Shown: one piece after another, positions 2,530 to 58,965 of the stretch
How positions within the stretch are numbered: the stretch's first letter is position 1
How the letters are laid out: every line of letters begins with the position of its first letter
Sequence record: MW760841.1
Strand: one strand, 5' to 3'
DNA: 64,000 nucleotides
Position numbers and translations under genes: made by a program
The notes under the pieces: model-generated
The model's input: the letters and a program-made list of their open reading frames with translations, nothing else
The model's database searches: none
Told to the model about the DNA's origin: nothing

Positions 2530-3830
2530 TTCCGCGTTTTCAGAAAATCGTGAACTCGCATATCGCCCAGGCTGTTGGGATGCCCGTCCTGAACTACGAT
2601 GCCATTGTCACGGTGAAAGGCAAACCGCTGACCATCATCAAAGTCCACTCGGTGATTAATGCCGGGAACTTTGTGAACGACATGACCGGTCTGGTGCACA
2701 TGACCATCGTGTTGCCATTAACCCAGCAACGAATCGCCACCTCTCGAGCTGACGGTGACTTACGCGTGCAGTTGATTGTCCGTACCGCCAATAAGCTGGT
2801 CGGTATCTTCCCGTATCGCGGGATTGCCATCAGTAACCGTGAGCAGGACATGGAAGCCCCTACCGCCTTTATGGGTGAGTCGGGGGACAAAGCCATTGCC
2901 ATGGTAACGTTTGAGTTAATGGACGAGTCCATGTGGTTTATGCGCACGGCTAACGTGCCGGTGAACTTCCATGACACCGATGCGTTAACGGTGGCGCGTA
3001 CCATTCTCGCCAAAACCATGCCGTCCTCCGGGGCGGACAAAGGTGAGGTGCAGTCGTTGCAGTACGAGGAAGAAGAACAGCAGGGGTACCGTGACATTAT
3101 CCTGCCGGACTCAACCACGTTCCTGGGGGTGTTCGATAAGCTCCAGGAGAACTACGGCATCTACAGCAAAGGCTTGGGCGTTTATCAGCATCTCCGTCGT
3201 TGGTACCTGTTCCAGTTGTACGACATCGAGAAGTTCAATACCGCGAAAGAAAAGCTGGTTGTCATGAACCTGCCGCGTGAGATGTCGGCCCACATCGACA
3301 AGACCATTCACATCACACCGGGTGTGCTCTATCTGATTACGGGCGGTGATAGCCGCACGCTATCGACCCGTGACGAGGATGCGTTGAATGTGGGTACTGG
3401 TTATCGGGTAGGTTCGATTCGTGCGCTTGACGGCCGTTCTACGTCGTTTACGCCGGGGGGCGTCAGTATGACCACCTCGGACAAGTTCGTCTCACAAGCG
3501 AACCCGGTCGATTACGCAGGCAAGATTCAGAATGCCCCGGTGGTCAAAGACCACTTTACCGATAACGACAAACCGCTGCGGGCTAAGTTAGCGCGCACGC
3601 AAGGGACGCTCACCAAAGTCACCTGGAACTATTCCATCCACGGATTGATTAAACCGGGCATGGCGGTGAAGTTCATGTTTGCCAACGAGTTCGGGATGTA
3701 TGCCCGTTACGGTACCGTGCTGGGTGAAGTCTACCAGGCCGGTCTGGACGGTGGTTCCATCGCCACCGGTCGCTACAACACCACCACCGAGTTAACGCTC
3801 TGGCTGGGGGAACAAAAATTTACGGCATAG
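2526..3830 (+). CDS. probable virion (tail/baseplate hub-like) protein
   Basis: 434 aa, beta-rich; ATGA coupling; synteny with phiKZ-like virion genes. Confidence 0.5.
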   Translation: MIPRFQKIVNSHIAQAVGMPVLNYDAIVTVKGKPLTIIKVHSVINAGNFVNDMTGLVHMTIVLPLTQQRIATSRADGDLRVQLIVRTANKLVGIFPYRGIAISNREQDMEAPTAFMGESGDKAIAMVTFELMDESMWFMRTANVPVNFHDTDALTVARTILAKTMPSSGADKGEVQSLQYEEEEQQGYRDIILPDSTTFLGVFDKLQENYGIYSKGLGVYQHLRRWYLFQLYDIEKFNTAKEKLVVMNLPREMSAHIDKTIHITPGVLYLITGGDSRTLSTRDEDALNVGTGYRVGSIRALDGRSTSFTPGGVSMTTSDKFVSQANPVDYAGKIQNAPVVKDHFTDNDKPLRAKLARTQGTLTKVTWNYSIHGLIKPGMAVKFMFANEFGMYARYGTVLGEVYQAGLDGGSIATGRYNTTTELTLWLGEQKFTA

Positions 3831-3842
3831 GCACTCTCTATG
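3819..3842 (+). promoter_or_regulatory. putative nvRNAP-type promoter (TTTACG-N14-TATG)
   Basis: ACG 3822-3824, 14-nt spacer, TATG 3839-3842, upstream of ORF 3872. Confidence 0.55.
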
Positions 3843-3871
3843 TCGAAGCAACCATAAGGACACGTCAAGTA

Positions 3872-4681
3872 ATGAAATCTGTTTTCACTCTCCGTATGCC
3901 TGGACACCTGATTCAGGCAATCGACGCGCACGAAGCCAAAGTCTTTAGCAAGCCTGCCCGCTTGTGGGATCGTATGGCCAAGGCCCTGCCACAGACTGGC
4001 ACCGTCGAACTCATGTACGTGATGGCAACCAACCTCGACCAGACCATCTCTATCATTCACCGTCACGATGGTGAAGAGAAGTGTGTGCGCCTGGCTATCG
4101 CCGATAAAGGTACCGTGGGTAACTTGCTGTTCATTCACTGCATGACCACGCTGCCTCTTTGGATGGCGTTGAGCGGACAGTACGAATTTGACTACATCTA
4201 CTACTACCACCAGAAACTGGCGGAGAATCTGGTTGTGGGCGATCCTTCTACGTACCCACGTTACGTAGAGCGTATCACCCCGCAGATTGCTTCCGAAGTG
4301 GAAAGTGAGCTGGAAGGTGAAGCCGAATGGAACATGTACCGCTTCCTGAAGATTGGTGAATCCCGTGACCCACAGAACACCGTGGCCTTGCGTGCGGTTG
4401 CGCGTTATGTCGCCCGTTCCGTGTCGCGTGAACTGTCCACCAACTTCAACGAAGTGTATCCGGTGGTGCAGTACGGTAACGTAATCACCTTCAACTCGTA
4501 CATTCCCCATCCGGCTCAGATTCTGGGGCCGTTCGATAATGAATGCACTTTGCCAGTCGCAGAAGACTACGGTCTGTACGCGAAGGACGCCGTTCACGCT
4601 GTCAGTGAAGAGCGTTTAGTCATTCATGCATTGAATGGCATGAGTGAACCTGATGTGCCGTATCTGACACAGCAGGGCTAA
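3872..4681 (+). CDS. hypothetical protein
   Basis: 269-aa ORF, AAGGA upstream. Confidence 0.65.
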   Translation: MKSVFTLRMPGHLIQAIDAHEAKVFSKPARLWDRMAKALPQTGTVELMYVMATNLDQTISIIHRHDGEEKCVRLAIADKGTVGNLLFIHCMTTLPLWMALSGQYEFDYIYYYHQKLAENLVVGDPSTYPRYVERITPQIASEVESELEGEAEWNMYRFLKIGESRDPQNTVALRAVARYVARSVSRELSTNFNEVYPVVQYGNVITFNSYIPHPAQILGPFDNECTLPVAEDYGLYAKDAVHAVSEERLVIHALNGMSEPDVPYLTQQG

Positions 4682-4688
4682 GGATCAG

Positions 4689-4721
4689 CCTGGCCTCCTC
4701 GTGAGGTCAGGTATTCTTATT
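4689..4721 (+). terminator. putative intrinsic terminator
   Basis: CCTGGCCTC/GAGGTCAGG stem, weak T-rich tail. Confidence 0.45.
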
Positions 4722-4825
4722 AAAAAACGTCCCTGGGGGCAGGAGATGTTTTTTCAGGTATTTCATCGTCTTAATGACGTAAGTCGCTCAGAGAGCTTCT
4801 GAGAGCGTTTTAGAGGGTATTACGC

Positions 4826-5236
4826 ATGAGCAAGCGGAACTTAAAGCATTTAGAAATCCCACAGCACACTTTACCACCGTTTACGTTCGTCCCGGACCGG
4901 AAGACCGACCGTCAGATTGCGGAAGGAAAATGTGACAACATTCCTCGTATTCAGGAGTTCATTCATCGCCGACGGCGGCAGATGATTATTCATTCGGTTA
5001 TCTACTATCGGATGGATGATTCGATTATCAGTGACTACACCTGGCAGGATTGGGCGAACGAATTGCGGGACGTGCAGAATCGGTGGCCGGAGTTAAAGGC
5101 CATGGGTTATCACGATGATTTGTTTGAGGAATGGGATGGGTCGACGGGGATGCATTTAGACCTGGTGCAGTATTACTCTCAGGCACAACGTATCCTGGGA
5201 TATCACCGTGAAAAGCACGGCGAGCTGCTACTTTGA
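4826..5236 (+). CDS. stand-alone NAD-dependent DNA ligase domain Ia-like protein
   Basis: IYYRMDDSIISDYTWQDWANELRDVQ matches the LigA Ia pattern YY-x2-D-x2-ISD-x5-EL; no adenylation domain follows. Confidence 0.6.
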   Translation: MSKRNLKHLEIPQHTLPPFTFVPDRKTDRQIAEGKCDNIPRIQEFIHRRRRQMIIHSVIYYRMDDSIISDYTWQDWANELRDVQNRWPELKAMGYHDDLFEEWDGSTGMHLDLVQYYSQAQRILGYHREKHGELLL

Positions 5237-5289
5237 TTAAAAAAGATTTCAGATATATATTACCTAGGTGAGATTAGAGTATTAATCTT
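5235..5289 (+). promoter_or_regulatory. putative early (virion RNAP) promoter, 55-bp repeat copy 1
   Basis: Contains TATATTAC, the phiKZ early consensus; 54/55 identical to 58012-58066. Confidence 0.75.
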
Positions 5290-5324
5290 AAATTAATCAT
5301 TCAATTTTACCTGGGGATTACATC

Positions 5325-5513
5325 ATGCCTAACGACGCACTGAACACTATGGCCCGTATCGAAGCAGCCCGTAAAGCCCGTATCACTGAAACCAATTCCA
5401 TGGGTCATCAGTCTGAAGCACTGCGTACCAGCACCAACACGCTGACCAGCAGCTTCCAACGTGGAAACGTGGCTGACCGTAATCTGGCCAATGCCATGGC
5501 TCGTCTGAAGTAA
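5325..5513 (+). CDS. small early protein
   Basis: 62 aa directly downstream of the early promoter; codon usage like highly expressed genes. Confidence 0.65.
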   Translation: MPNDALNTMARIEAARKARITETNSMGHQSEALRTSTNTLTSSFQRGNVADRNLANAMARLK

Positions 5514-5545
5514 TTCCCCCTATTCGACTATCAAGGAATATTATC

Positions 5546-6097
5546 ATGAAAACTGCACCTCGCTCTGTAATCAACTTCGGTACCACCATCGTTGAAGTCA
5601 TCACTCCTAAATTCTCCCCGTTCGTGGTCACTGTCACTGACCGTGGCGTGACCATTAACCATGGCGATACCGTCATCGCTCAGAAACACATCCACAATGT
5701 GATGGACAACATTGAACTGAATATCCAGGTCGCCCTGGATACCGCATACCGTCAAGCAATGCTGCACCTGGCATTCAATGACCGCTTCACTCTGCAAGCG
5801 CTGTACCGTCATCTGGTACGTGTGACCACCGAAGGTATGGTGGAACCAGAAAACATCAATGATGTCGCGGGTCAGATTACCGCCATCATGAAAATGACCA
5901 AACGTGCTAACGACGTCAATACGGTCATGATTAGTGAGACTGAGCTGGACAATCCAGAAGAGTCACAGTTCGACTTGGTACTGCGCCACGACGGTGAAAT
6001 CTTCACTGCGAACGGCAGCGCCTTCCAGATTGAACTGGCGAACATCTTAACTGGACTGCCGGTACTCGGTCGCCCAGAACTGTCTGAAACCAACTAA
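5546..6097 (+). CDS. hypothetical early protein
   Basis: 183 aa; GACTATCAAGGA RBS. Confidence 0.7.
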   Translation: MKTAPRSVINFGTTIVEVITPKFSPFVVTVTDRGVTINHGDTVIAQKHIHNVMDNIELNIQVALDTAYRQAMLHLAFNDRFTLQALYRHLVRVTTEGMVEPENINDVAGQITAIMKMTKRANDVNTVMISETELDNPEESQFDLVLRHDGEIFTANGSAFQIELANILTGLPVLGRPELSETN

Positions 6098-6155
6098 TAA
6101 AAACTCGGGGGTCACATGGCCCCCAACTTAACTTCGACTATCAAGGACTACTATC

Positions 6156-6296
6156 ATGACTATCATTCACAAACGTGCTATCATCACCATCGCTGTTGTT
6201 GTCGCTCTGGCGTGCTCTTACATCACCCTGAACAAAGACTACAACAAATGCCTGGACAACGGCAACTCTGTAGCTCAGTGCACAGGACGTGGCTAA
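6156..6296 (+). CDS. 46-aa membrane peptide (absent from ORF track)
   Basis: AAGGA SD; MTIIHKRAIITIAVVVALACSYITLNKDYNKCLDNGNSVAQCTGRG; stop overlaps next ATG (TAATG). Confidence 0.7.
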   Translation: MTIIHKRAIITIAVVVALACSYITLNKDYNKCLDNGNSVAQCTGRG

Positions 6297-6478
6297 TGGA
6301 ACTGGACTTCGACAAACCAAGCGTACGCCTCTCATCCATGACAGGCTCCTGGGTCAGTATCCCACACCCAGACCGTATTCCGCAAATCGAGGACGACACC
6401 GTTCTCGTTACTGCTACCATTTGTAATCCCGTTGAGCATATCCGCTCAGCGTTACTTCCGTTCCAGGAACTCTATTAA
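6296..6478 (+). CDS. 60-aa hypothetical protein
   Basis: MELDFDKPSV...; coupled to upstream peptide; followed by terminator. Confidence 0.6.
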   Translation: MELDFDKPSVRLSSMTGSWVSIPHPDRIPQIEDDTVLVTATICNPVEHIRSALLPFQELY

Positions 6479-6479
6479 G

Positions 6480-6504
6480 CCACCTTCGGGTGGTTTTATT
6501 TTTT
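6480..6504 (+). terminator. intrinsic terminator
   Basis: CCACC-TTCG-GGTGG plus T tract. Confidence 0.75.
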
Positions 6505-6527
6505 GTTATCCCACAAGGACAAATACC

Positions 6528-7563: not shown

Positions 7564-7576
7564 AAAAATATACTGG

Positions 7577-7666: not shown

Positions 7667-7675
7667 GATGGCTCT

Positions 7676-9241
7676 TTAGCCAAACAGGTCGTCGCCCATA
7701 CCACCGGTAAAGTGGTTTATGCTTGAAGCTGATACTGTCATTTCTTTGTCGCAATCCCAGGGTAAAATCCCTACGTCAGCAAAAGGTAAAACGGTATAGT
7801 GATATTTTTCAGGGGTGTCAATAATCGTACGGTGTTTCCCACGCTGCACTTCGAGGAAGCTGTGACCACTTACAACGCGCTTGTTGAAGTAGAACTCACC
7901 ATCGGCCTCGTTATCCAAACTGGTACAGGTGTCGTACAGACCACGACCGGGCAGGTTCTTACAAAAACCAACAGGGTCAGCAGCCTTCAATCGTTTCCCT
8001 TCTGGGGAAATCTGGTGTGGTGCCAGCAGGAAGCCGTGGTTACGGACTACCTGGATGTTACGCGCGATACGGTAGATTTCTTTGATATCGCTACCCACGA
8101 TACCGTTACCGTGTCCGGCTTTGTTAATCGTGCCGAGGTAGTCAGCACGCATTCCAACCACATGGAAGCCTTCGCGTTTGTAATCACTAATCAGGTCGTT
8201 CAGGTAATGCACTTTGAAATCGGTGTTGGTGTGTTTCTCGAAAGAGTATTCCCAACCGTTTGCACGAATCTTGTCGACCAGGTAGTTTGCCATGTAAGCG
8301 ACGTGTGCTTGACGTTCTTCTTCGGTGGCAGACTCCGGCAGAGTCATGGTCGGTGCACGGCCTTCAAAGTGACCGTAGATTGCCTGGTATGCGTAGGCAA
8401 TATTTACATCCAGTTCGTTCTCGAGAGACAGGTCGAGAATCAACGGCATCAAGTCGCCCTTCACATCCGCCATGACTTTCTCAGGCGTATTGAACAATGG
8501 TATAGAGATAGCCGTTAACAAACTAAACAGCGATTTGCAGTTAAAGGGTAACGCAGGCATCAGCCAAAGTTCTTCGGTGATTCCGTTGTTACAGCCGGTC
8601 ATTTGGTTCACGGCTTTCCAGCCGGTACGCAGACCGTTACCTGCCACCTTCTTGTTAATGTCCGCAAACTTCTTCACAAATGGGGCACGGTTCGTTGTAA
8701 TTAATTTGCCAACTTGTGAAGGAATCTTATTATGAGGACGTTCACTGAACGTGGTTAACGATCCTTGGAGTTCGCCAATCGCTGTTAGCAAGTCCACACG
8801 GGACTCTGTGCCGTTCAGTACGCCGAGGGTGCGCCCTAGCTTTTGCTTCAACTGAACGCCTTGCAATGCTTGACGCAATTGGAAATAGCAATCCTGCTGC
8901 TGCTTGGTGAAGAAGTCTTCTAACTCTTCTTCCTTGGTTGGGACACCGTCCTCCAGGAATCTCTGTATCGTATCGTATAGAGAGCCGGTTTGCGTAGTAG
9001 CGAGTTTAATTCGCTTCATGACGGTGCTGTGTTGATACTTCATCCCGCCGTCAATGATTAATGTAATAATGTCCTTGATCTCAGCTAACGCTGATCGCTC
9101 ATCGCTGTCGTCGATATACTCCGGCAGCTTCACCTCAAGCAAAACTTTTCTTATGACGTCATGATCTTTCGTCGCGTCAGTCATAAAGCTTTCTGCGTAG
9201 AGGGTGGCCAAGGCTGTTATCAACATCATTTTACTATTCAT
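7676..9241 (-). CDS. dnaB: DnaB-like replicative helicase (phiKZ gp118-like)
   Basis: GLRTGWKAVNQMTG, variant Walker A (ALPFNCKS), DLSLEN, ADYLG, APHQIS, QRGKHR arginine finger; divergent from the capsid operon as in phiKZ-like phages. Confidence 0.85.
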   Translation of the reverse strand: MNSKMMLITALATLYAESFMTDATKDHDVIRKVLLEVKLPEYIDDSDERSALAEIKDIITLIIDGGMKYQHSTVMKRIKLATTQTGSLYDTIQRFLEDGVPTKEEELEDFFTKQQQDCYFQLRQALQGVQLKQKLGRTLGVLNGTESRVDLLTAIGELQGSLTTFSERPHNKIPSQVGKLITTNRAPFVKKFADINKKVAGNGLRTGWKAVNQMTGCNNGITEELWLMPALPFNCKSLFSLLTAISIPLFNTPEKVMADVKGDLMPLILDLSLENELDVNIAYAYQAIYGHFEGRAPTMTLPESATEEERQAHVAYMANYLVDKIRANGWEYSFEKHTNTDFKVHYLNDLISDYKREGFHVVGMRADYLGTINKAGHGNGIVGSDIKEIYRIARNIQVVRNHGFLLAPHQISPEGKRLKAADPVGFCKNLPGRGLYDTCTSLDNEADGEFYFNKRVVSGHSFLEVQRGKHRTIIDTPEKYHYTVLPFADVGILPWDCDKEMTVSASSINHFTGGMGDDLFG

Positions 9242-9254
9242 GGAGCATCCTTCA

Positions 9255-9794
9255 ATGCGAATTCGTTTTAGCCCACCGTGGGAAGTTCAACCTAACATAG
9301 ATAAAGTGGCCAGCGTTAAAAAGTTAGAAACGCTGCAAGCTGAATTCTTTAATTGGTTATATGACTGCAAACCCGTACGGTTTAGCTCTGCCATCCTCCC
9401 GGATTGCTCCCCGGTTGCTATCTACAAATCGTTGATGGCACCGCCGGTGCTTCCAGGTCAATATTATGACCAAGTGTTAAACTTGGTGCAAAAAGGTTCG
9501 AACGAATCCCTTGCTGATTTATATGGGGAAGCGTTCGCCGGTCGTCTTCGTTGGGTGTTCACTCAGCGTAACGATGTGATTGTGGCGTCGCTCGCCGAAG
9601 CGAAGCCGGATAAACCCGGTTTTACTTTGGACGAACAACACGCTGCGAAAAAGATGTTCTGCGCAGAACTTTTTAAATATGTGCGTACAAAAACCCGCGT
9701 TGTCGACGATACATTCAGTACCTCAACGCAGTTTGCTGCTCATGAAGTGCTGACGCAATTATACGCATGTCATTTACTTAACAAGGTACTTTGA
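9255..9794 (+). CDS. conserved hypothetical protein upstream of capsid gene
   Basis: GGAG before ATG 9255; alternative starts at 9204 and 9240. Confidence 0.6.
   Translation: MRIRFSPPWEVQPNIDKVASVKKLETLQAEFFNWLYDCKPVRFSSAILPDCSPVAIYKSLMAPPVLPGQYYDQVLNLVQKGSNESLADLYGEAFAGRLRWVFTQRNDVIVASLAEAKPDKPGFTLDEQHAAKKMFCAELFKYVRTKTRVVDDTFSTSTQFAAHEVLTQLYACHLLNKVL
9296..9323 (-). promoter_or_regulatory. putative nvRNAP-type promoter for helicase (TTTTTAACG-N14-TATG on - strand)
   Basis: Reverse complement reads CTTTTTAACG CTGGCCACTTTATC TATG, about 55 nt upstream of the helicase start. Confidence 0.55.
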
Positions 9795-12192: not shown

Positions 12193-12213
12193 AGATAGAT
12201 ATTATCTAAGGGA
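12193..12213 (+). promoter_or_regulatory. putative early promoter
   Basis: AGATAGATATTATCTAAGGGA. Confidence 0.6.
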
Positions 12214-12243
12214 ATGACTATCTTATTTTATCAAGGAGTAGCT

Positions 12244-13646: not shown

Positions 13647-13716
13647 TTTTTTACGTGGAGACCAAGTGATATGGGCATTCACTCCACGTATTTTGGGATA
13701 GATATTATCCATGTGA
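13647..13716 (+). promoter_or_regulatory. tandem promoters (ACG-N14-TATG plus early motif)
   Basis: TTTTTTACG..TATG 13647-13673; GGATAGATATTATCCATGTGA 13696-13716. Confidence 0.6.
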
Positions 13717-13747
13717 ACTGTTCGTTGGTTTTATAATTGGGTACCTC

Positions 13748-21752: not shown

Positions 21753-23939
21753 ATGCAGAGGTTCAATATCTTTAGAGACCAGAACATCGAGCTGGCGAAA
21801 TCGCTGATTATCAAATCGGATACGATCGCACAGCAGATGAATCTGGCCATAACCGAGAATGGCGGTTATGTGTCGAGTGACCGCAACACATGGCGGTATT
21901 ACCTGCACCTGGCAGGCAGACGACATGATGCCGACCAACCAATCCTTATCACATCGTTAGATACACAAGAGTTAATCGAGCTGACGACAGCTAACCTGTC
22001 TATTCATAAGAAAACCTCGAACGTGTATCGCTCCAACACCGAGTATATCGACCAGCTCATTTTAACGAATCCGGACTACGCGGTCTATATAAAGGGATGC
22101 TTCTGGCCGGTCCCCTTGACGGTGTCAATTAACGTCAATGACTGCTCTATCCTTTATTACAACCCGGCTCTGGTGGAGTCCCAGGAGCAGTCGTTAGTCC
22201 ACGACATGGAGAAGTTGATTAACGCCGCCCACGTTCGCTATATGGCGGATGGCTGGAAGGTGAACAACGATGCCTTCGTGTTAGGCTTCTACGTGATGCT
22301 GTACCCACAGTTGCCGAGTATGTTGATGCGCTTGCGTGCCTGTAAGCAGTTCACGCTGGAAACGCACACCTACTACGTCACGGAATTCCTGGCCTCACAC
22401 CAGGAGCTGCACGAGTTCATTCCGTACATGACCCGTACCATGATGTTCACGGTGTACCGTAACATTCGCTACTGGGAACGTAACTCCGGGAAGAAAGAAA
22501 TCTTTGACTGGATGGTAGAGACCTTCTTCACAGGCTGGAGTATGCCTGCGGTCGCGTACCGTGTCGGACAACAGATTCATGACCCGTCGACGGGGAATGA
22601 TGAAGACCTGACGCCACGCCCAGTGGGTTACCAGGAAGCGCTCAACTATACCGAGCGTAACTCGGGCCGTGACCTGGACTTGGTCAGTACCGCCGACATC
22701 ATCCAGAAAGAGATTCCGCTGGCGTATAACAACGCCGTGCACCAACCGGAATACCAGGCAGACGTTGACCGCCGGTTAGGTTTGACGCAGTACCCGAACC
22801 TGACCACCAAACTGGTGGAAGTCACCGCCATCGACCCAGAGGCTATCGAGCGTTGGGAGTTCACGCACGCCATCTTTAATGAATGGCTGCACCTGACAGC
22901 GAAAGGCCAGTATAACGTCTCCCACGAGTTCCTGAACCCGACGAACGGTGACACCATCAAGATTTCCACCAAGGAGCTGATGGCGTTGTATTTGTACGCG
23001 GGCTTCAAAGGGTTCTCAGGTGTGGCGTTAGAGAAGATTCCGGCGTTCCATGCGCTCGGGGTGCAAATCAAACGTTGGGTCAGTGTACCGGAGATGCGCA
23101 ACTACCTGGTGAACGATAGCTGGGAAGGGCGCTACGACAAAACCATCAACTACTACGCCGACACGCAGTACGAAGTGGTTGGCGATGTGTTGAGTAACGA
23201 TGAGTTTTACGATGCTGCGTTTGCGATGATTAACAACAAACGTCGTCGTTACAACTACACGTACAACCGTCGCAAGATTAAAGACCGCGCTGCTGCACTC
23301 CAGCTGTTCGCGTACCACTACAAAGATTACCGCTGTGATTTGGAACTCCCGTATCGTGATTACGAAGAGTTCTTCCAAAACCTGGGATTTGATTACACGA
23401 TTATCTCAGACGAAACCTGGCAAGATATTGCGACCGATGCGTTTAACATGGGTACCAATATGGAAAACCGTGCGACCTTGTCTCACGGAGAAATCCAACG
23501 TGCAATGGTGAAGTTGATGGGGAAACTTTCCTCGTACACCATTCACTTTGCTGCCAGGATGTCCGCTGACTCGTACGACATCACTGACCCTATTACCCCG
23601 ATACTTGGAGATATTCCAATGTCGGCGGGAATGAGTACCGATGTCGATGACCCGCACGTTGGGGTTGTGTCAGTGCGTGCCCGCGCCACAATGACGACCG
23701 CTAACCCGCTCGCCGTGATGCCGGAAATCACCAAGATGTCCATGCCGAGAAAGTACAAATTCTGCATGAACGTCTTCCTGGGTATTCAGGTACGTGTCCA
23801 TCAGAACATTCGCGTTGATATTGAAACGAATGCCGTGGGGGTTGTTTCCCAGGAGCTGACGAATACGAAAATCACACTTGCAGACAAAGTGAAGAAATAC
23901 GCACTGGACGGCTTCCGTTCTGATGAGTTCTTTAACTGA
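21753..23939 (+). CDS. virion structural protein, probable baseplate wedge (phiKZ gp128-like)
   Basis: 728 aa; TWRYYLHLAG, RNIRYWERNSGK segments; head-to-head with portal. Confidence 0.65.
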   Translation: MQRFNIFRDQNIELAKSLIIKSDTIAQQMNLAITENGGYVSSDRNTWRYYLHLAGRRHDADQPILITSLDTQELIELTTANLSIHKKTSNVYRSNTEYIDQLILTNPDYAVYIKGCFWPVPLTVSINVNDCSILYYNPALVESQEQSLVHDMEKLINAAHVRYMADGWKVNNDAFVLGFYVMLYPQLPSMLMRLRACKQFTLETHTYYVTEFLASHQELHEFIPYMTRTMMFTVYRNIRYWERNSGKKEIFDWMVETFFTGWSMPAVAYRVGQQIHDPSTGNDEDLTPRPVGYQEALNYTERNSGRDLDLVSTADIIQKEIPLAYNNAVHQPEYQADVDRRLGLTQYPNLTTKLVEVTAIDPEAIERWEFTHAIFNEWLHLTAKGQYNVSHEFLNPTNGDTIKISTKELMALYLYAGFKGFSGVALEKIPAFHALGVQIKRWVSVPEMRNYLVNDSWEGRYDKTINYYADTQYEVVGDVLSNDEFYDAAFAMINNKRRRYNYTYNRRKIKDRAAALQLFAYHYKDYRCDLELPYRDYEEFFQNLGFDYTIISDETWQDIATDAFNMGTNMENRATLSHGEIQRAMVKLMGKLSSYTIHFAARMSADSYDITDPITPILGDIPMSAGMSTDVDDPHVGVVSVRARATMTTANPLAVMPEITKMSMPRKYKFCMNVFLGIQVRVHQNIRVDIETNAVGVVSQELTNTKITLADKVKKYALDGFRSDEFFN

Positions 23940-23962
23940 TGCATTAACCCGGTGAGAAAATT

Positions 23963-24484
23963 ATGCCATACCGTGTAGACCTATCGAAATCCCCGAAAGA
24001 AATACTGTTGAATCGTATTAACTACGTCTTCGGTACATCTTATAGACCGGATCAGATTGAATTTAACAGCCGAGGTGCGTGGCCGCTCACGAAGGATGAG
24101 CGTCGTGCTAAGGGTGTTGAGTCAAAGATTGCGGCGTCCTTTAAGAACGGGGTGGCGGGTACGCGTGAGTTCTACCTGACGCGTGCTAACCTGACTGAAC
24201 TGTTGGATGGGGAAGTGGTGGAGGTGCCGCAAGGAGTGGCTGAATGGAGTCACTACCTGGTACCGTACATCCGTGATTCCTTAGGGCTGGATTTGGGCGA
24301 CTATGACCTGGTCGTAGAACCGATTGACAGTACCAAAGAATTGTACCTGGCCAAAATCGAACCACATCATCCTTCTTTTAAAGGGACGATTGTAATCACC
24401 TTTATCGACCCGACCCCACGCCGTCTCGCAGAGCTGGTTACCTTGCGCAGCCTCGATGGATTCAATATTGGAGAATTTTTCTAA
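23963..24484 (+). CDS. virion structural protein
   Basis: 173 aa; N-terminus resembles the tail paralogue domain (LLNRIN...F...P). Confidence 0.55.
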   Translation: MPYRVDLSKSPKEILLNRINYVFGTSYRPDQIEFNSRGAWPLTKDERRAKGVESKIAASFKNGVAGTREFYLTRANLTELLDGEVVEVPQGVAEWSHYLVPYIRDSLGLDLGDYDLVVEPIDSTKELYLAKIEPHHPSFKGTIVITFIDPTPRRLAELVTLRSLDGFNIGEFF

Positions 24485-25371
24485 TGGCAAACAGTAAAAC
24501 GTACGACGGGAAGCTGTCGACGGCTACCTTGAGCGCGATGCGTTTATCCGCCGCACTGATTTGTGGTGCGCCGGTACAGTATCCGCAGAACTCAACCTTG
24601 AATGAGTTCTATAAGCTGATGACTGCCCGTCAGCCTGACCCAGCCGACCGCCCGACACTGAAGTATCTGGCGATTGGTAATCGTGGTCACCGTGCAGAAA
24701 GCGACGGGGATATCGATGACTTCGTGCCAGTTGGCAAAAGCCCAACCGTCTCCGGGATGTTCTCCGATGTACCTTGGGTACTGCGTCCACTGGACAATGA
24801 CCTGAGTGACGAGCAGCGTAAGAACTACCGTTTCCGTACTCAGGTGAACATCAACGGCCGTAACTACTGGGCGTACTACCTGCGTACGCTGGATATGCGT
24901 ACCGTGAAGACCACGGATATCGAAACCATCCGTACCAACGGGGTGCCGGTACCGGACGACTTCGTATACACCGATGCTGACCTGCATCCAGTGCCAGGAC
25001 GTCTGCCAGACTACGATTACGATGATGACGGCACCGTGGAAATGCCGGATGGTCGTTACGTGGAATCCGGTGCAGACATCTTCATCTCGTGGACTGAGTT
25101 CGACGTGCAGGAATACCTGAACGTGGCCTCTATCATGCGTGGCTCGGCTAACAAAGCGCTGATTTCTGAAATCTCCATGTGCTCTGGCCTGGACGTTCCG
25201 GAAACCGGACAGTCAGCATCAGGTTCTCCGTTCAGCTACACCGAAGCTATCGGTGTGCAGGCGTTGTACCATATCTCGCTGTTTGTTAACCTGGCACAGA
25301 CCAATGAGAATCTCGGTCTGACTATCCGCGTGGGTCAGCCTGCACCGTTCTTCTTAGGGGACGCGTCGTAA
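24484..25371 (+). CDS. virion structural protein (phiKZ gp139-like)
   Basis: NSTLNEFY, YLAIGNRGH, PWVLRPLDNDLS, YWAYYLR motifs. Confidence 0.65.
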   Translation: MANSKTYDGKLSTATLSAMRLSAALICGAPVQYPQNSTLNEFYKLMTARQPDPADRPTLKYLAIGNRGHRAESDGDIDDFVPVGKSPTVSGMFSDVPWVLRPLDNDLSDEQRKNYRFRTQVNINGRNYWAYYLRTLDMRTVKTTDIETIRTNGVPVPDDFVYTDADLHPVPGRLPDYDYDDDGTVEMPDGRYVESGADIFISWTEFDVQEYLNVASIMRGSANKALISEISMCSGLDVPETGQSASGSPFSYTEAIGVQALYHISLFVNLAQTNENLGLTIRVGQPAPFFLGDAS

Positions 25372-26613: not shown

Positions 26614-26672
26614 ACTCGCTCCTTCGGGGGCGAGTTTTATTTTTTCTTTTTACGTCATATTGCTTTTATGTG
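26614..26672 (+). terminator. terminator overlapping ACG-N14-TGTG promoter
   Basis: ACTCGCTCC-TTCG-GGGGCGAGT plus T tract; ACG 26652-26654, TGTG 26669-26672. Confidence 0.7.
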
Positions 26673-28684: not shown

Positions 28685-28739
28685 CCTCTCCCTTCGGGGA
28701 GAGGTTCTCTTATTTTTTTCGTAACGGGTCAGTGATATA
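28685..28739 (+). terminator. terminator followed by TTTTCG-N14-TATA promoter variant
   Basis: CCTCTCCC-TTCG-GGGAGAGG plus T tract. Confidence 0.7.
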
Positions 28740-33201: not shown

Positions 33202-33260
33202 CCCACCCTTCGGGGTGGGTGTACTCTATATTTTTTTGGATAGATATTACTTAGGTGAGA
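33202..33260 (+). terminator. terminator immediately followed by early promoter
   Basis: CCCACCC-TTCG-GGGTGGG plus T tract; GGATAGATATTACTTAGGTGAGA 33238-33260. Confidence 0.7.
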
Positions 33261-33625: not shown

Positions 33626-33652
33626 TTTTTTACGTCACCGCTAAGTGGTATG
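33626..33652 (+). promoter_or_regulatory. putative nvRNAP-type promoter
   Basis: TTTTTTACG-TCACCGCTAAGTGG-TATG. Confidence 0.6.
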
Positions 33653-33700
33653 CCGTAGTGCGTCGGTTAAAACGCACCAACTTAACTAAGAGAGAAACCT

Positions 33701-34532: not shown

Positions 34533-34567
34533 CAGGCATCCTTCGGGGTGCCTGTTTTGATTTTTTT
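34533..34567 (+). terminator. intrinsic terminator
   Basis: CAGGCATCC-TTCG-GGGTGCCTG plus T tract. Confidence 0.75.
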
Positions 34568-35374: not shown

Positions 35375-35432
35375 GAGGTGCCCTTCGGGGCACTTCTTTT
35401 TTTTTTGTTTTACGGGAGTTGCTCATTATGTG
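35375..35432 (+). terminator. terminator followed by ACG-N14-TGTG promoter
   Basis: GAGGTGCCC-TTCG-GGGCACTTC plus long T run; ACG 35412-35414. Confidence 0.75.
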
Positions 35433-36132: not shown

Positions 36133-36138
36133 GCAGTG

Positions 36139-36235
36139 CCCCTTACCTTCGGGTAAGGGGTTGCTTATTTTTTACGTTACCGCCCCCTCCTATGCTCTAA
36201 ATAATCTCAGATAGATATTATTTAGGTGACATTAG
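36139..36235 (+). promoter_or_regulatory. terminator plus tandem promoters
   Basis: CCCCTTACC-TTCG-GGTAAGGGG; TTTACG-N14-TATG (36174-36194); CAGATAGATATTATTTAGGTGAC (36208-36230). Confidence 0.65.
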
Positions 36236-36577: not shown

Positions 36578-36931
36578 ATGCGTTACCAACACGTTGCTAC
36601 CCGTGCGGCCAAAGAAACTTTCATGACCCACTTGTCCTTCATCATTGAAGAACTGAATACCAAAACTACACAGCGCGAATTAGCCCAGCTGTGTCAGGTC
36701 TCCGTCTCGACCATCGGAGCCATTAAGAACGGCCACAGCAAGAACGTTTCCTTCGAAACTATTCTGCGTGTCGCCGATGCTATCCGCCTGACTTACGAAG
36801 TGGTGTTGTCTTCGAAGTTCGGCAAAGCTCGTTACACCGTGAAGTGCGAAGCGGGCTACGAGTACATGAAGGCCGCTCGTGTTAAAGTCACTGAGCAGGG
36901 TCGTATTGTTCAAGCTAGAATGAGAGGATAA
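36578..36931 (+). CDS. XRE-family helix-turn-helix protein
   Basis: TQRELAQLCQVSVSTIGAIKNGHSKNVSFETILRVADAI. Confidence 0.8.
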   Translation: MRYQHVATRAAKETFMTHLSFIIEELNTKTTQRELAQLCQVSVSTIGAIKNGHSKNVSFETILRVADAIRLTYEVVLSSKFGKARYTVKCEAGYEYMKAARVKVTEQGRIVQARMRG

Positions 36932-38011: not shown

Positions 38012-38019
38012 CAATTAAT

Positions 38020-38077
38020 AAGGGGGCTTCGGCCTCCTTATATTTTTTGTCTTTTTACGTTTGCTATAGATCTTGTG
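38020..38077 (+). terminator. terminator followed by TTTTTACG-N14-TGTG promoter
   Basis: AAGGGGGC-TTCG-GCCTCCTT plus T tract; ACG 38057-38059, TGTG 38074-38077. Confidence 0.7.
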
Positions 38078-43092: not shown

Positions 43093-43127
43093 AATCCCTC
43101 ACTTAGCGGTGAGGGATTCTTTTTTTA
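43093..43127 (+). terminator. intrinsic terminator ending the GNAT/dam operon
   Basis: AATCCCTCAC-TTAGCG-GTGAGGGATT plus T tract. Confidence 0.75.
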
Positions 43128-43187
43128 TTTAAATACAGATGGGGTTATCTATATGTACAAACCCCCATCAATTAGAGGAATACAAGA

Positions 43188-43792: not shown

Positions 43793-43878
43793 CAGATAGA
43801 TATTATTTAAGTGAGAGTACCTACTCTTGCCGGACTCGTCCTACCCTTAATCGGGTAGGACGTAGTTTTATATTTTTT
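43793..43878 (+). promoter_or_regulatory. early promoter followed within ~25 nt by a terminator-like hairpin
   Basis: CAGATAGATATTATTTAAGTGAG; CGTCCTACCC-TTAATC-GGGTAGGACG plus T-rich tail. Confidence 0.6.
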
Positions 43879-44346: not shown

Positions 44347-44372
44347 TTTTTACGTCAGCAATCAATCTAATG
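44347..44372 (+). promoter_or_regulatory. putative nvRNAP-type promoter
   Basis: TTTTTACG-N14-AATG. Confidence 0.5.
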
Positions 44373-49346: not shown

Positions 49347-49369
49347 CAGATAGATATTATCTTGATGAG
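49347..49369 (+). promoter_or_regulatory. putative early promoter
   Basis: CAGATAGATATTATCTTGATGAG. Confidence 0.55.
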
Positions 49370-53479: not shown

Positions 53480-53500
53480 ATACCCCATTAGGAGAATCAA

Positions 53501-54025: not shown

Positions 54026-54027
54026 TC

Positions 54028-54661: not shown

Positions 54662-54663
54662 CT

Positions 54664-55008
54664 ATGTTGAACTGGTTGGTAGCAAAGATTAACAAACGGC
54701 AGAAGTACCTCTACGAGGAGAATGCCCGCCTGCGTAAACAACTGCGCAGTGAAAAACTAAAGTCCGAGGTACTGGAGAACTGTCTGGACGACCTCAAGAC
54801 AGGGGCGACCCAGGCGATAACGCTTATCCAGAAGGGCGATGTGACCATTGAAAATGGCCGCCGCCAGGTTCAGGTTGTCGACCATGACCTGGGTATGGAA
54901 TACATCCGCACAGCCTGCGGAGAACTGAACGGGAAACTCTACTGGGTTGAACGTGAAATTGAAACTCTTAAACGTAAGGAAGAACCGCGTGAAAAACGAG
55001 CATACTGA
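54664..55008 (+). CDS. small coiled-coil protein
   Basis: 114 aa; MLNWLVAKI start. Confidence 0.6.
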   Translation: MLNWLVAKINKRQKYLYEENARLRKQLRSEKLKSEVLENCLDDLKTGATQAITLIQKGDVTIENGRRQVQVVDHDLGMEYIRTACGELNGKLYWVEREIETLKRKEEPREKRAY

Positions 55009-55336
55009 AGAACTGGCTTTGGCCATTGAGCACATGAAAGTCCATCAGCTGACCACGCTGCAAGCGAAGACCGAAAGTGCTCGCCACACAGCTGTGACCA
55101 TGATTCGTCATGGCATTGCCCGCAACAAAGAACTCATCCAGGAATTCAATGAGTTGCAGACCTATGTGTTGAACAACCCAGGGCACGAATCGTTCGACCG
55201 TATCGGTGAGCTGCTGCGTAAGCATGAAGCTTGGGCTGAGCAGTTTGCCGATGAGCTGTCTTGTTCGTTGGGTATTGACCCACGTAAAACTGACGAACCG
55301 ATGGCACCGCTGGTGTTCCTCAAAGCGAAGGAGTAA
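54989..55336 (+). CDS. helical hypothetical protein
   Basis: AAGGA SD before GTG 54989. Confidence 0.6.
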   Translation: MKNEHTEELALAIEHMKVHQLTTLQAKTESARHTAVTMIRHGIARNKELIQEFNELQTYVLNNPGHESFDRIGELLRKHEAWAEQFADELSCSLGIDPRKTDEPMAPLVFLKAKE

Positions 55337-55339
55337 TCG

Positions 55340-55663
55340 ATGGGCGAATTGGTGAGTCTTTATACTGACCTCACGGGTAAGTCTCCTCAGGAAGTTCTGG
55401 AGGCGTTACAGCGTGGGGAACGTGTGCAGGATACCGATGCCAACGCCGATGCGATTCTGATGACGCTCGTTCCTCTACGGGGCGAGCATTACCAAATCGC
55501 ACTGTTAGGTAGCGAGTATGTGGTACGCACGCCAGGACGCGAATACGAGGCTTTTAGAGCCCCTCGCACGATAGGCGGCGTAGTGTTGGTGATTTGTGGA
55601 TTGGAACGTGCCATACGGGAATGTGCTATTTACATTGCCAGTGGCGGACAGGGGCATTTCTGA
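55340..55663 (+). CDS. hypothetical protein
   Basis: 107 aa; AAGGAG SD. Confidence 0.6.
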   Translation: MGELVSLYTDLTGKSPQEVLEALQRGERVQDTDANADAILMTLVPLRGEHYQIALLGSEYVVRTPGREYEAFRAPRTIGGVVLVICGLERAIRECAIYIASGGQGHF

Positions 55664-56085
55664 TGGGCTGGTTAGATTGGTTAAAGCGTGATGAGCTGCG
55701 CCGCATCGACGGACTTCGGGTACAGGTACAAGAACAACGTAGCCTGCGGAAGGAGTCTGAAAGCGCACACGAACTCACCGAAGAACTACTTCATACGGTT
55801 CTGGCACACATCAACGTCAAGATGCAAGCCGGTGAACCGTGGGCGGAAGTGTACAACGGTGTTATTGAAAAGCTGGGTGATAAATCCCAGATAGCCGTAC
55901 GGGAGGCTACCTTACAGATGATGCATCAGCACCAACTGAAGGGGAGCAACCTCAACATGATACAAGACCCAGTGTTCGAGTTCCCAGAACCGAAACGGGT
56001 GGTGTTCCCTAACGGAACAGAAGTCACGGCACTGAATTCAGGTGCAGCAGATAACGACTGGTGGAAAGAACACTCAGGTCGTTAA
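55663..56085 (+). CDS. coiled-coil hypothetical protein
   Basis: TGATG coupling; MGWLDWLKR start. Confidence 0.6.
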   Translation: MGWLDWLKRDELRRIDGLRVQVQEQRSLRKESESAHELTEELLHTVLAHINVKMQAGEPWAEVYNGVIEKLGDKSQIAVREATLQMMHQHQLKGSNLNMIQDPVFEFPEPKRVVFPNGTEVTALNSGAADNDWWKEHSGR

Positions 56086-56108
56086 TAATACCCATTAAGG
56101 AGAATCAC

Positions 56109-57059
56109 ATGTCTGTAAAACAACGTAAGCTTCGCGCCGCTAAGCGCGCACACCACGCCAAGAAAAGTAAAGCAGAGCGTGTACAATACAACCTTTCCCG
56201 TGTTGGGATTAATGCGCATCTCGACGGTGGTAAGCTGTCGACTATGGACAGAATCCTGGCACCGCGACCATCGTTGAGCTTGAACTCGCCAACGTTTGAT
56301 CTCGATATGACAGAATTGCACCGCAGTTCGAACCGCCACGCAATCATCCGCGCATTAGATGAACTGGATGTCCAGCACGTCGAACCGAAACTGCGCGATG
56401 ATGTGATTAGAGCGGTAAATGACGAACTCTGTCGCGGCAGCTCTATCGATATTGATAATCCGGCGATTCAGCATCCCTTCCACTTTTTGGAAGCCTGGTT
56501 ACCGACCCAGGGGGAATTCGTATTGGTTGACGTAAAGTCCGGTTTTCCGCCTCCGTCCCAGACGATTGAAATGATCATGGCGCAAGCCCGTGTTGTTTGG
56601 GAGACGAGTGATGAGAAGCTGATTACGCCAACCGCTGACAATATTGTCGATTGGCTGATTTCCTACGGTCAGAAAATCTGTAAGGGTAAAATCCAGGACT
56701 ATTTAGGTATTCTCAATACCGGAACGCCACGCGGGTGGTTCGATGATATCGACCCGGAGATGTTTAGCCGTATTCGTGCACTGGCGGGTAGCATGTCCTT
56801 CTTCCCACATTTTCCACAAATGCAGCACGACGTACCGAATCCGGGCGAAGTGATACTCGATATGGAAGCACCGTTGGGTGAGGGTTTCTTCAAGATTATC
56901 AAAGGTCGAATGGGTGAGTTGGGAGATGAACGATTCATCATTGACTCGTTATCTGAATTAGTACCAGACGCACTGAAAGATACCGATGTCGGCGAACCGA
57001 AGAAATCACCGTATGGCAACATCTTCCAGACCACCCCGAAAGGAAAAAACAATGCTTAA
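56109..57059 (+). CDS. hypothetical protein with basic N-terminus
   Basis: TAAGGAG SD before ATG 56109. Confidence 0.7.
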   Translation: MSVKQRKLRAAKRAHHAKKSKAERVQYNLSRVGINAHLDGGKLSTMDRILAPRPSLSLNSPTFDLDMTELHRSSNRHAIIRALDELDVQHVEPKLRDDVIRAVNDELCRGSSIDIDNPAIQHPFHFLEAWLPTQGEFVLVDVKSGFPPPSQTIEMIMAQARVVWETSDEKLITPTADNIVDWLISYGQKICKGKIQDYLGILNTGTPRGWFDDIDPEMFSRIRALAGSMSFFPHFPQMQHDVPNPGEVILDMEAPLGEGFFKIIKGRMGELGDERFIIDSLSELVPDALKDTDVGEPKKSPYGNIFQTTPKGKNNA

Positions 57060-57960
57060 ACCACGTAAGTGCCGCAAACTGCTGTTAATCATTAGCCCGC
57101 AACTGAAAGCAGCGATTGGTAAGAAACTCTTTGCCATTAATGGTGAGTGGTCAGGGAAAGAATTCATTAAGTACGTCAATGCCTCCCCGTCCATTCGTCC
57201 ACAGCTCGGAATGGTAGCCCGTAAGCTGGGTACTATCTACGCCCGGCACATGGAAAAGCATTTCGGTGTCGGTAGAAAGGCAGACTGGACGAAGATACGC
57301 AATGTTGGTGAGGAGGAACTGCCTCAACGTCAAACGGGTCAGAAAGCACTGGCGCAACTGTTAGCGGGTAAGCCAGGGTTCGCTCGCTCAAAACCGACAT
57401 CGCTGGGTGGCGGGAACGTCGCCACCCGACTCGACTTTAACTATCACGACCATGTACCCAATACCGACCAGAAGCATTACTTCGCCACGCCGGAGAAAAA
57501 TACGACAATGATGCAACACACGCGTGACTCGATTGCGCACCTTACATTGACAGGGCGTCCGCCTGAAACCGTTACCCCAGCTAGTGAACTAAACGAGCGT
57601 CTTCTGTCGGAACCTCGTAGCAGTCACAGTGTCCTGACGTCTGAATGCCGTACAGAACTTTCCCGTCCTAAACTGTCTGAGCTGACAATGAGTGATGCCG
57701 AGTGCAGCGTACCGGCTCCTTATCAAGAGCCCAAAGAAGGGGAGTTACTTTCCCCGGAACTGGAAATCAAAGGCGTCCATCTGAAGCAGTCCAAGTTAGA
57801 CCCCAGCGAAGTTCGCCGTCTGGTTGAAGCTTATGGTGATATCGCTGAGAAGCAACTTATTGAAAAGTTCTTCTCTGAAGTGGTAACAAGTGAACGTGAC
57901 GACGAAGCCTTCCAAAAGGTAGGCCGTGCGTGCCTGTTCCGTATGCTGGAAGCTAAATGA
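57052..57960 (+). CDS. hypothetical protein
   Basis: AAAGGA SD before ATG 57052 (MLKPRK). Confidence 0.65.
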   Translation: MLKPRKCRKLLLIISPQLKAAIGKKLFAINGEWSGKEFIKYVNASPSIRPQLGMVARKLGTIYARHMEKHFGVGRKADWTKIRNVGEEELPQRQTGQKALAQLLAGKPGFARSKPTSLGGGNVATRLDFNYHDHVPNTDQKHYFATPEKNTTMMQHTRDSIAHLTLTGRPPETVTPASELNERLLSEPRSSHSVLTSECRTELSRPKLSELTMSDAECSVPAPYQEPKEGELLSPELEIKGVHLKQSKLDPSEVRRLVEAYGDIAEKQLIEKFFSEVVTSERDDEAFQKVGRACLFRMLEAK

Positions 57961-57964
57961 GCAG

Positions 57965-58001
57965 TACCCACTCCTTCGGGAGTGGGTATTCTTCTTTTTT
58001 T
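57965..58001 (+). terminator. intrinsic terminator
   Basis: TACCCACTCC-TTCG-GGAGTGGGTA plus T tract. Confidence 0.8.
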
Positions 58002-58011
58002 GTCCAGATTC

Positions 58012-58066
58012 GATTAAAAAATATTTCAGATATATATTACCTAGGTGAGATTAGAGTATTAATCTT
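58012..58066 (+). promoter_or_regulatory. putative early promoter, 55-bp repeat copy 2
   Basis: 54/55 identical to 5235-5289. Confidence 0.75.
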
Positions 58067-58108
58067 TTCTCCTAACCTTATTTTAATTGACTATCAAGGA
58101 TTACTATC

Positions 58109-58531
58109 ATGGCTACTATCACTCTGAACGATTCAATCCGGGCCGCCGCTAAAGCTAACCCAGCATCACTGATGATGATTGTTGGACTGTACACTTCAAC
58201 CGGCAAGGTCAACAATATCGACCGCTGCATGATTGAACGCGAATCCGAAAACTTCATGCGTAAAGCGCAGGAAGAAGTTGTACTGGTACGTAAAGACTTC
58301 GACACTGACGAAGCTTACAACGACCAGGTTAATCACCAAATCATCCTGAAGGCTCTGGCCACTGAGCTGAGTGACCAGTTCCGTGCCAGCACCATCCCAG
58401 GCATGGTTAAAGAAATGTACGCCCGCATCAAAGGTAACGTGGAGACACACAAAGCGTGGAACTCGCTGACTGAGTCTACCCGTGCACTGGAAGATGCATT
58501 CATCAATAAAGCTATCGCTGAGCTTTACTAA
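58109..58531 (+). CDS. helical early protein
   Basis: 140 aa; GACTATCAAGGA RBS; highly expressed-type codons. Confidence 0.7.
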   Translation: MATITLNDSIRAAAKANPASLMMIVGLYTSTGKVNNIDRCMIERESENFMRKAQEEVVLVRKDFDTDEAYNDQVNHQIILKALATELSDQFRASTIPGMVKEMYARIKGNVETHKAWNSLTESTRALEDAFINKAIAELY

Positions 58532-58596
58532 TCGCACTACCTCCCTACCCAAACGGGTAGGGAGTCAACTTTAATAAACTTAATAAGGAATTCACC

Positions 58597-58824
58597 ATGC
58601 GCAATCTGTTCACTAAAACTGAAGTAACTCCAGTTGTTCCAGCAACCAAAACTGTTGCTAAGAAAAACGAAGACATGCTCGACATCCTGCTGAAGCTCTC
58701 TCACACTGAGCGTGAAGCAGTAATGAAAACCATCAAAGAAGGTAACAAGATGGTGAACGAGCTGGAGGTAATCTACGGAAAAAAGGACAAACCAAAAAGT
58801 AATGGTTTGGTCTGGATGTGTTAA
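58597..58824 (+). CDS. small early protein
   Basis: 75 aa; TAAGGA SD. Confidence 0.65.
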   Translation: MRNLFTKTEVTPVVPATKTVAKKNEDMLDILLKLSHTEREAVMKTIKEGNKMVNELEVIYGKKDKPKSNGLVWMC

Positions 58825-58865
58825 TGAAAGGTAAAAGCAATGCGCAAATACAACTTGCGATGTTA

Positions 58866-58921
58866 GCGTACGAGGAGACTCGTACGCGATGCTTTTATTT
58901 TTTTGTTCCTTCTTTTTTTTT
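58866..58921 (+). terminator. intrinsic terminator
   Basis: GCGTACGAG-GAGA-CTCGTACGC plus T-rich tail. Confidence 0.65.
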
Positions 58922-58942
58922 GTCCTCGGGCGAATCTTCGGT

Positions 58943-58965
58943 CGACGTAGTCAACCTTTAATATG
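58943..58965 (+). promoter_or_regulatory. putative late promoter for tail paralogue array
   Basis: CGACG-TAGTCAACCTTTAA-TATG (N14). Confidence 0.5.

Follow-up and report, generated by a model that had tools for sequence, protein, structure and literature searches.

Phages of the phiKZ type transcribe their genomes without the host RNA polymerase (RNAP) (PMC7598289, PMC4666361), and the promoters described for phiKZ fall into three classes. A highly conserved AT-rich core of ~10 nt near -10 marks the early promoters, which are read by the virion RNAP (vRNAP) (PMC7598289). Middle promoters carry the box AAanTTACc near -24, and two of them, P62M and P78M, also have TATG at +1 (PMC4666361, describing Ceyssens 2014). 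Late promoters, read by the five-subunit non-virion RNAP (nvRNAP) (PMC4666361, PMC12809450), consist of T(-3)ATG(+1) only; all four bases are required and no upstream sequence is conserved, although TATG by itself is insufficient for specificity (PMC4666361). In the phiKZ nvRNAP promoter complex reported in 2026, the beta-like phiKZ gp123 binds TATG and the sigma-like gp68 holds the backbone from -17 to -24 (PMC12809450). Purified nvRNAP does not transcribe middle promoters in vitro, and a TTAC-type box inserted in a late promoter lowered nvRNAP transcription 3-fold (PMC4666361). For the reading of the middle promoters, whose products include the vRNAP subunits, a missing factor has been postulated (PMC10612078). 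Phage 201phi2-1 has a homologous middle class, in which one promoter drives a tRNA (PMC11512511), and middle-class 5' ends of phiKZ (PMC10914365) and 201phi2-1 (PMC11512511) were captured by a triphosphate-enriching method. A 2020 review held that middle and late promoters are not predictable from sequence (PMC7598289). Here, a 64,000-nt stretch of jumbo phage DNA (the window) is shown to contain copies of a bipartite motif, TTTTTAC(G/A)-N14-T(A/G)TG, called A-type, which probably represents a phage-specific promoter class, the counterpart in the SPN3US phage group of the phiKZ middle promoters.

At 100% identity, the window matches the Erwinia phages pEa_SNUABM_8 (MW760841.1, 249,194 bp), which is SPN3US-like, and pEa_SNUABM_4. 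Both are Machinavirus jumbo phages with ChrisDB and Caitlin among their relatives and Salmonella phage SPN3US as a more distant one. Positions refer to the window unless given as record positions, which are larger by 62,000. Genome-wide counts cover the 249,194 bp of MW760841.1, assembled from six annotated stretches, and gene starts follow the deposited annotation (292 features, every start and stop codon checked). The coding density is 94%, and intergenic DNA amounts to 14.6 kb.

The strongest single result for the motif is its spacing. Among intergenic occurrences of TTTTAC followed by TRTG at any distance d from 6 to 26, 16 have d=15, 4 have d=16, and every other distance is represented by 0–2 copies; TTTTAC-N15-TRTG has no copy in coding DNA anywhere in the genome. 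A spacing of N15 counted after TAC equals N14 counted after ACG; this sharp peak of 16 intergenic copies bears out the exact 14-nt spacer of the original prediction, which had been made by reading the window alone. TTTTTAC is the top-ranked k-mer when gaps upstream of genes are compared with the rest of the genome (30 observed, 0.3 expected), and the base that follows it in these 30 copies is G in 15 and A in 10. In 1000 dinucleotide-preserving shuffles of 145 upstream regions, TTTAC-N15-TRTG averaged 0.19 (maximum 3) against 18 real copies, and the bare core AC[GA]-N14-TRTG averaged 3.05 against 29. Enrichment over shuffled intergenic sequence was one test that the original prediction had set for itself beforehand, and its own pattern, TTWCG-N14-TRTG, occurs 12 times against 0.21 in the same shuffles. 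Within the window, TTTTWCG-N14-TRTG is present 6 times against 0.20 expected, a count reached in none of 100 shuffles. A scan with a position weight matrix (PWM) derived from the sites themselves returned, at ≥12 bits, 32 intergenic matches and 7 in coding DNA, which is 16-fold larger; 28 of the 32 lie 17–157 nt (median ~52 nt) upstream of a co-oriented gene start. The A-type motif is thus confirmed as real, with enrichment far above chance.

In the column profile of the sites, where the G of TRTG is taken as the predicted +1, information is confined to the box TTTTTACR at -25 to -18 and the initiator T-R-T-G at -3 to +1, apart from a weak T at -6. The spacer columns between them, -17 to -4, hold almost no information; these 14 bp are free sequence and often GC-rich. 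At initiator position -2 the 18 seed sites divide into 10 with A and 8 with G, and TGTG, AATG and TATA occur as conserved initiator variants besides TATG. Roughly 30–35 A-type sites are present in the genome when N16 variants and weak copies are included, and 12 of them fall in the window (scores are from the PWM):

3817..3842, + strand: A-type site upstream of gp81 (start 3872), with box AATTTACG, N14 and TATG; 16.1 bits
9296..9321, - strand: A-type site of the helicase gene (7676-9241, minus strand), with box TTTTAACG, N14 and TATG
13648..13673, + strand: A-type site upstream of gp95 (start 13748); 22.3 bits
26647..26672, + strand: A-type site with TGTG, upstream of gp106 and an acetyltransferase gene; 30.9 bits
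28714..28739, + strand: degenerate A-type copy upstream of gp110, TTTTTTCG, N14 and TATA
33627..33652, + strand: A-type site upstream of gp119 (start 33701), without an upstream terminator; 27.0 bits
35407..35432, + strand: A-type site with TGTG, upstream of the thymidylate kinase gene (start 35467), conserved in relatives; 30.9 bits
36169..36194, + strand: A-type site upstream of gp122 and the candidate helix-turn-helix (HTH) regulator gp123, conserved in relatives; 23.7 bits
38052..38077, + strand: A-type site with TGTG, upstream of the GNAT / Dam methylase operon (start 38104); 30.6 bits
43130..43155, + strand: A-type site upstream of gp133 (start 43188), TAAATACA, N14 and TATG; 26.6 bits
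44347..44372, + strand: A-type site with AATG initiator, upstream of gp136 (start 44396), without an upstream terminator; 24.4 bits
58940..58965, + strand: weak variant without T-run, upstream of a virion-protein gene array (start 59032), GGTCGACG, N14 and TATG; below 8 bits

Each of the 11 coordinates in the original prediction carries the letters given for it, and 10 fit the core consensus, the TCG/TATA site being degenerate; the list was incomplete, having missed the good site at 43130-43155. Its description of the box as WCG needs revision, as the conserved box is TTTTTAC followed by G or A. The degenerate copy at 28719 and the copy without T-run at 58945 are both conserved.

A strong hairpin, usually with a CTTCGG loop, precedes 6 of the 12 window sites, and its T-tract runs into the box. 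The T-run extends the tail of hairpin 26614-26635 at site 26647..26672, and the sites at 35407..35432, 36169..36194 and 38052..38077 are fused to terminators 35375-35396, 36138-36161 and 38018-38041. Site 28714..28739 lies directly 3' of terminator 28685-28704, with its TATA abutting the ribosome-binding site, and site 43130..43155 lies 3' of terminator 43093-43118. The sharing of a terminator U-tract with the promoter T-run, as originally proposed, therefore holds at these six sites, and so does the placement just after a terminator; the remaining sites keep the T-run without a hairpin, often directly after a stop codon, which argues that the T-run is part of the promoter itself. Terminator-like sites are themselves frequent, at 38 against 18.7 in shuffles of the 19 kb examined, and the hairpins at 26614-26635, 28685-28704, 34533-34554, 35375-35396, 36138-36161 and 38018-38041 nearly all have a tetraloop of the C-TTCG-G type.

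The motif is shared by the relatives. Counts against a reversed-pattern control are 21 vs 3 in ChrisDB, 23 vs 2 in Caitlin, 20 vs 2 in SNUABM_9, 18 vs 2 in SNUABM_10, 15 vs 1 in SPN3US, 24 vs 2 in phiEaH2 and 15 vs 3 in CR5, and the N15 spacing peak recurs in SPN3US (12), Caitlin (20) and SNUABM_10 (15). Orthologues of the downstream genes were located by tblastn, and the motif was found at the same distance from the start (within ±6 nt) for 22 of 30 genes in Caitlin, 10 of 28 in SNUABM_10 and 13 of 28 in SPN3US, where chance would give ~0.2. At such orthologous sites the distance between the boxes is kept, with identities of 85–100% in the boxes and ~40–50% in the spacer; clear examples precede gp95, the GNAT/Dam operon, SbcC, the UvsX operon and DNA polymerase.

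At site 13648..13673 of the window, Caitlin, SNUABM_10 and SPN3US retain the boxes around a diverged spacer, and site 38052..38077 is likewise conserved as far as SPN3US with a spacer that has diverged. At 3817..3842, where the box falls within the last codons of the preceding gene, AC[GA]-N14-TATG stands at equal start distance in Caitlin, SNUABM_10 and SPN3US, and ACA-N14-TATG is kept in the same three phages at 43130..43155. Boxes and spacing are identical in these phages at 9296..9321 as well, but this conservation is less telling because the site is located in coding DNA, inside the 5' end of the divergent gene gp91. Site 26647..26672 and the AATG variant at 44347..44372 are both kept in ChrisDB, Caitlin and SNUABM_9, and the place in SPN3US orthologous to the degenerate copy at 28714..28739 has a canonical CTTACG-N14-TATA. 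At the weak site 58940..58965, TATG and the next 16 nt are kept in Caitlin, SNUABM_10 and SPN3US together with AC[GA] at a distance of exactly 14 nt on the upstream side; both a TATG promoter of the late type and a weak A-type promoter are possible readings of this site. Site 33627..33652 differs in its spacer and keeps its boxes and spacing in ChrisDB, Caitlin, SNUABM_9, SNUABM_10 and SPN3US.

The leader between this last site and gp119 (33652-33700, + strand) is far better conserved than the promoter spacer. It contains a hairpin, GTGCG-TCGGTTAAAA-CGCAC, that reads GTGAG...CTCAC in ChrisDB and SPN3US, a compensatory pair. The hairpin has one copy per genome, the orthologous places being ~8222-8275 in ChrisDB and ~92590-92650 in the SPN3US record, and judging by these sequences it may be a regulatory element of the 5' untranslated region.

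By annotation, the genes behind the motif include replication and recombination genes (DNA polymerase B, helicase, SbcC, UvsX, RNase H/exonuclease) and nucleotide metabolism genes (thymidylate kinase, the thymidylate synthase and DHFR operons, deoxyribonucleotidase). Dam methylase, a tRNA array, tRNA-Trp and the homologue of the phiKZ vRNAP subunit gp80 are also served. This corresponds to the middle-type gene set of phiKZ, by annotation rather than by expression. Among the structural-gene starts, 11 have a gap on their upstream side, and none of these 11 is preceded by a strong A-type copy; 23 upstream regions of structural and late genes contain no common box or late motif, only scattered TATG. 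One further region stands apart, a 1.5 kb segment without an annotated gene (record 247657-249194) that has no tRNA or Rfam match. It holds an A-type site at record 248347, CCAATTACA-N14-TATG, with close likeness to the tRNA-Trp site at record 918, and the segment may encode an unannotated RNA or small genes.

A second motif, B, is very strongly conserved and occurs ~24 times in intergenic DNA, each time in the orientation of the gene that follows. It reads GATAGATATTATC-N4-TGA, in the form GATA(G/T)ATATTA(T/C)C-N4-TGA, and its end is (G/A)TGA. Its copies in the window are:

5252-5272, + strand: motif B
12194-12214, + strand: motif B
13697-13717, + strand: motif B
33239-33259, + strand: motif B
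36210-36230, + strand: motif B
43795-43815, + strand: motif B
49349-49369, + strand: motif B
58029-58049, + strand: motif B

Homologues of the phiKZ nvRNAP subunits (gp55, gp68, gp71-74) and of its vRNAP subunits (gp80, gp178, gp180) were both identified in pEa_SNUABM_8 by tblastn. Motif B lies upstream of the homologues of all tested nvRNAP genes (gp55, gp68, gp71-74), and it is therefore probably the early, vRNAP-read promoter class, which fits the published description of early vRNAP promoters. The genome would thus combine both RNAP sets with a separate early class. Several genes have the two motifs in tandem; in the window these are the pairs 13648/13697, where motif B begins 24 nt beyond the A-type site, and 36169/36210. 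At record 244814-244816 the motifs overlap, and the TGTG of the A-type site coincides with the (T)GTGA of motif B, which suggests a shared start-site context.

Two genes deserve mention beside these observations. gp44 (record 23328-24515) is annotated as an RNA polymerase beta' subunit; its best phiKZ match is gp65, an SbcD-like nuclease subunit, and the annotation looks wrong on that comparison. Behind the putative tandem A-type and B-type promoters at 36169/36210 lies pEa_SNUABM_8 gp123 (36578-36931, + strand), which belongs to the HTH_3 proteins of the XRE/Cro type (E = 8e-8). Caitlin, SNUABM_10 and SPN3US have conserved versions of it (43% identity), a tblastn search of phiKZ returned no match, and its sequence makes it a candidate transcription regulator of the SPN3US phage group.

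Assignment of the A-type motif to a middle-type promoter class is given a rough probability of 0.65. One competitor is the class proposed in the original prediction, namely late nvRNAP promoters that have TATG at the start and to which, in this phage, the T-rich ACG box adds specificity from upstream. About half of the A-type initiators do match the phiKZ late T(-3)ATG(+1), an extra element is plausible given that TATG alone is insufficient for specificity in phiKZ, the gp68 backbone contacts at -17 to -24 fall where the box lies (PMC12809450), and one weak copy stands ahead of the virion-protein array. However, the genes served are those of DNA polymerase, helicase, SbcC, UvsX, RNase H, thymidylate kinase, Dam and tRNAs, with no strong copy at the 11 gapped structural starts; the conserved TGTG, AATG and TATA variants would be dead in phiKZ late promoters; and the TTAC-type box was inhibitory to nvRNAP, by 3-fold, when placed in a phiKZ late promoter (PMC4666361). 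A late class is accordingly unlikely. What stands of the original interpretation is a bipartite, promoter-like element with a TATG-type initiator in a phage with both phiKZ-type RNAP sets, whereas its late nvRNAP assignment conflicts with the genes served, the A or G at -2 and the geometry of phiKZ P78M. Somewhat less likely still is that the motif is no initiation signal at all, and serves either as the binding site of a phage regulator, such as the XRE-type HTH protein gp123, or as an RNA processing site that creates 5' ends from longer early transcripts. Processing was raised as an alternative for the phiKZ middle 5' ends (PMC10612078), but the middle 5' ends of phiKZ and 201phi2-1 came from a triphosphate-enriching method (PMC10914365, PMC11512511), and many A-type sites follow strong terminators, so that little read-through RNA would be available to process. 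A regulator site would suit the HTH_3 gene, which is encoded right behind two A-type sites and conserved to SPN3US, and would accommodate a conserved copy that overlaps a start codon better than a promoter does; the motif is nevertheless asymmetric, unlike typical operators of HTH dimers. The fixed spacing with a free spacer, strict co-orientation and 20–50 nt leader have the anatomy of a promoter and speak against both variants.

It is very improbable that the motif reflects host sigma-70 promoters in which TTTACG/TTTACA serves as the -35-like hexamer, or terminator tails combined with chance. TTTACA does equal TTGACA at 5 of 6 positions and half of the window sites adjoin terminators, but the gap from hexamer to TRTG is 14 bp, outside the 16–18 bp range, with no conserved -10-like hexamer; sigma-70-like sites are not enriched (15 vs 17.6 in shuffles); and phiKZ-type phages transcribe independently of host RNAP (PMC7598289, PMC4666361). 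The half of the sites that lack a hairpin still have the T-run, and chance is excluded by the spacing histogram and the shuffle counts.

Several points weigh against a middle-type promoter class. The start site, timing and polymerase of the A-type sites are all inferred from sequence. The absence from the 11 structural starts is by itself not significant (p ~0.08, our own estimate), and the one weak copy at 58940-58965 does precede the virion-protein array. At record 178564-178589, an A-type motif conserved in four phages includes the start codon of gp221 in its TATG and the ribosome-binding site of that gene in its spacer, an arrangement that a simple promoter leaves unexplained. The conservation profile of boxes and spacer is partly built in, because the sites were picked by a relaxed motif. 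The flank of the A-type box is T-rich (T5), whereas the phiKZ box is A-rich (AAanTTAC); the A-type box is nearly always coupled to T(A/G)TG, whereas most phiKZ middle promoters lack TATG; and the composite pattern shows no enrichment over the reversed control in phiKZ, 201phi2-1 and Ea35-70, with a small N15 excess in phiKZ (6 of 32 matches). In view of these differences and of the non-enrichment in phiKZ, the equivalence rests on geometry, the TTAC core and gene context.

If the A-type sites are middle-type promoters, each would comprise an upstream box T5-A-C-(G/A) at about -25 to -18, exactly 14 unconstrained bp, and the initiator T(A/G)TG, the last G of which is the predicted first RNA base. 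The boxes lie about two helical turns apart and would therefore be exposed on one face of the double helix. Initiation there would be by a multisubunit RNAP of the phage rather than by the host enzyme, giving mRNAs with 5' leaders of ~20–50 nt. The likeliest enzyme is nvRNAP, which would read the initiator, while its sigma-like subunit (gp47 here) or an added factor would read the upstream box; this is the simplest model because the beta-like subunit reads TATG in phiKZ and gp68 spans -17 to -24. At about one third of the sites the T-run would double as the U-tract of the preceding terminator, producing compact terminator-promoter cassettes. A bolder and more tentative proposal, which we consider possible rather than probable, is that the specificity determinant of middle transcription in nucleus-forming jumbo phages docks at the T5AC(G/A) box, whether this determinant is a domain of the sigma-like nvRNAP subunit (the N-terminal one of pEa_SNUABM_8 gp47) or a separate accessory factor, and that in the SPN3US group this box is obligatorily coupled to the nvRNAP initiator. 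Were this so, nvRNAP with a factor, and not vRNAP or RNA processing, would make the middle transcripts, and the sharp consensus would be a handle for DNA-affinity capture or in vitro reconstitution of the factor.

The motif bears on the succession of early, middle and late transcription in phiKZ-like phages. For the SPN3US group of enterobacterial phages, the promoter of the middle type would be a sharp, bipartite signal predictable from sequence. A literature search, incomplete in its coverage, found no earlier description of the motif for SPN3US-like or Machinavirus phages, and what appears novel is a sharper form of the phiKZ middle-promoter class, in which the two parts obligatorily go together. 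The motif permits operon maps of ~240-kb genomes that are mostly annotated as "hypothetical", in which many unknown genes would gain a temporal class, and its box, fixed spacer and initiator give defined templates for a biochemical search for the missing factor. SPN3US is genetically tractable, making the prediction directly testable.

Compared with known promoter systems, the A-type motif differs from sigma-70 promoters, whose hexamers are 16–18 bp apart; here 14 bp separate TTTACR from TRTG, and no -10 consensus is present. With the early vRNAP promoters of jumbo phages it would share use by a phage polymerase, but it serves different gene sets and lacks the AT-rich ~10-nt core near -10, a feature that motif B has. 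Its resemblance to the phiKZ late promoters lies in an initiator of four bases that overlaps the predicted start and whose G is probably the first base transcribed. Unlike them, it is not a TATG standing without an upstream element: it has a strong upstream box, admits A or G at -2, conserves AATG and TATA variants, and serves non-structural genes, with only the weak site 58940-58965 preceding virion genes rather than the virion and lysis genes expected of that class. The phiKZ middle promoters come closest. Both have a TTAC core, with C at -19 relative to the G of TATG, and the TTAC-containing box lies ~22–24 bp upstream of the start if the G of TRTG is +1. Both precede non-structural genes of the middle type, tRNA genes and the gene of a vRNAP subunit, and both are separate from an AT-rich early motif that here, too, precedes the nvRNAP genes. 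The A-type consensus can be found from sequence alone, and in this phage it is from sequence, rather than from experimental 5' ends, that it is known. In the phiKZ sequence, the region upstream of gene 78 (P78M) reads AAAATTACC-N14-TATG, that is TAC-N15-TATG, a geometry identical to that of the A-type motif.

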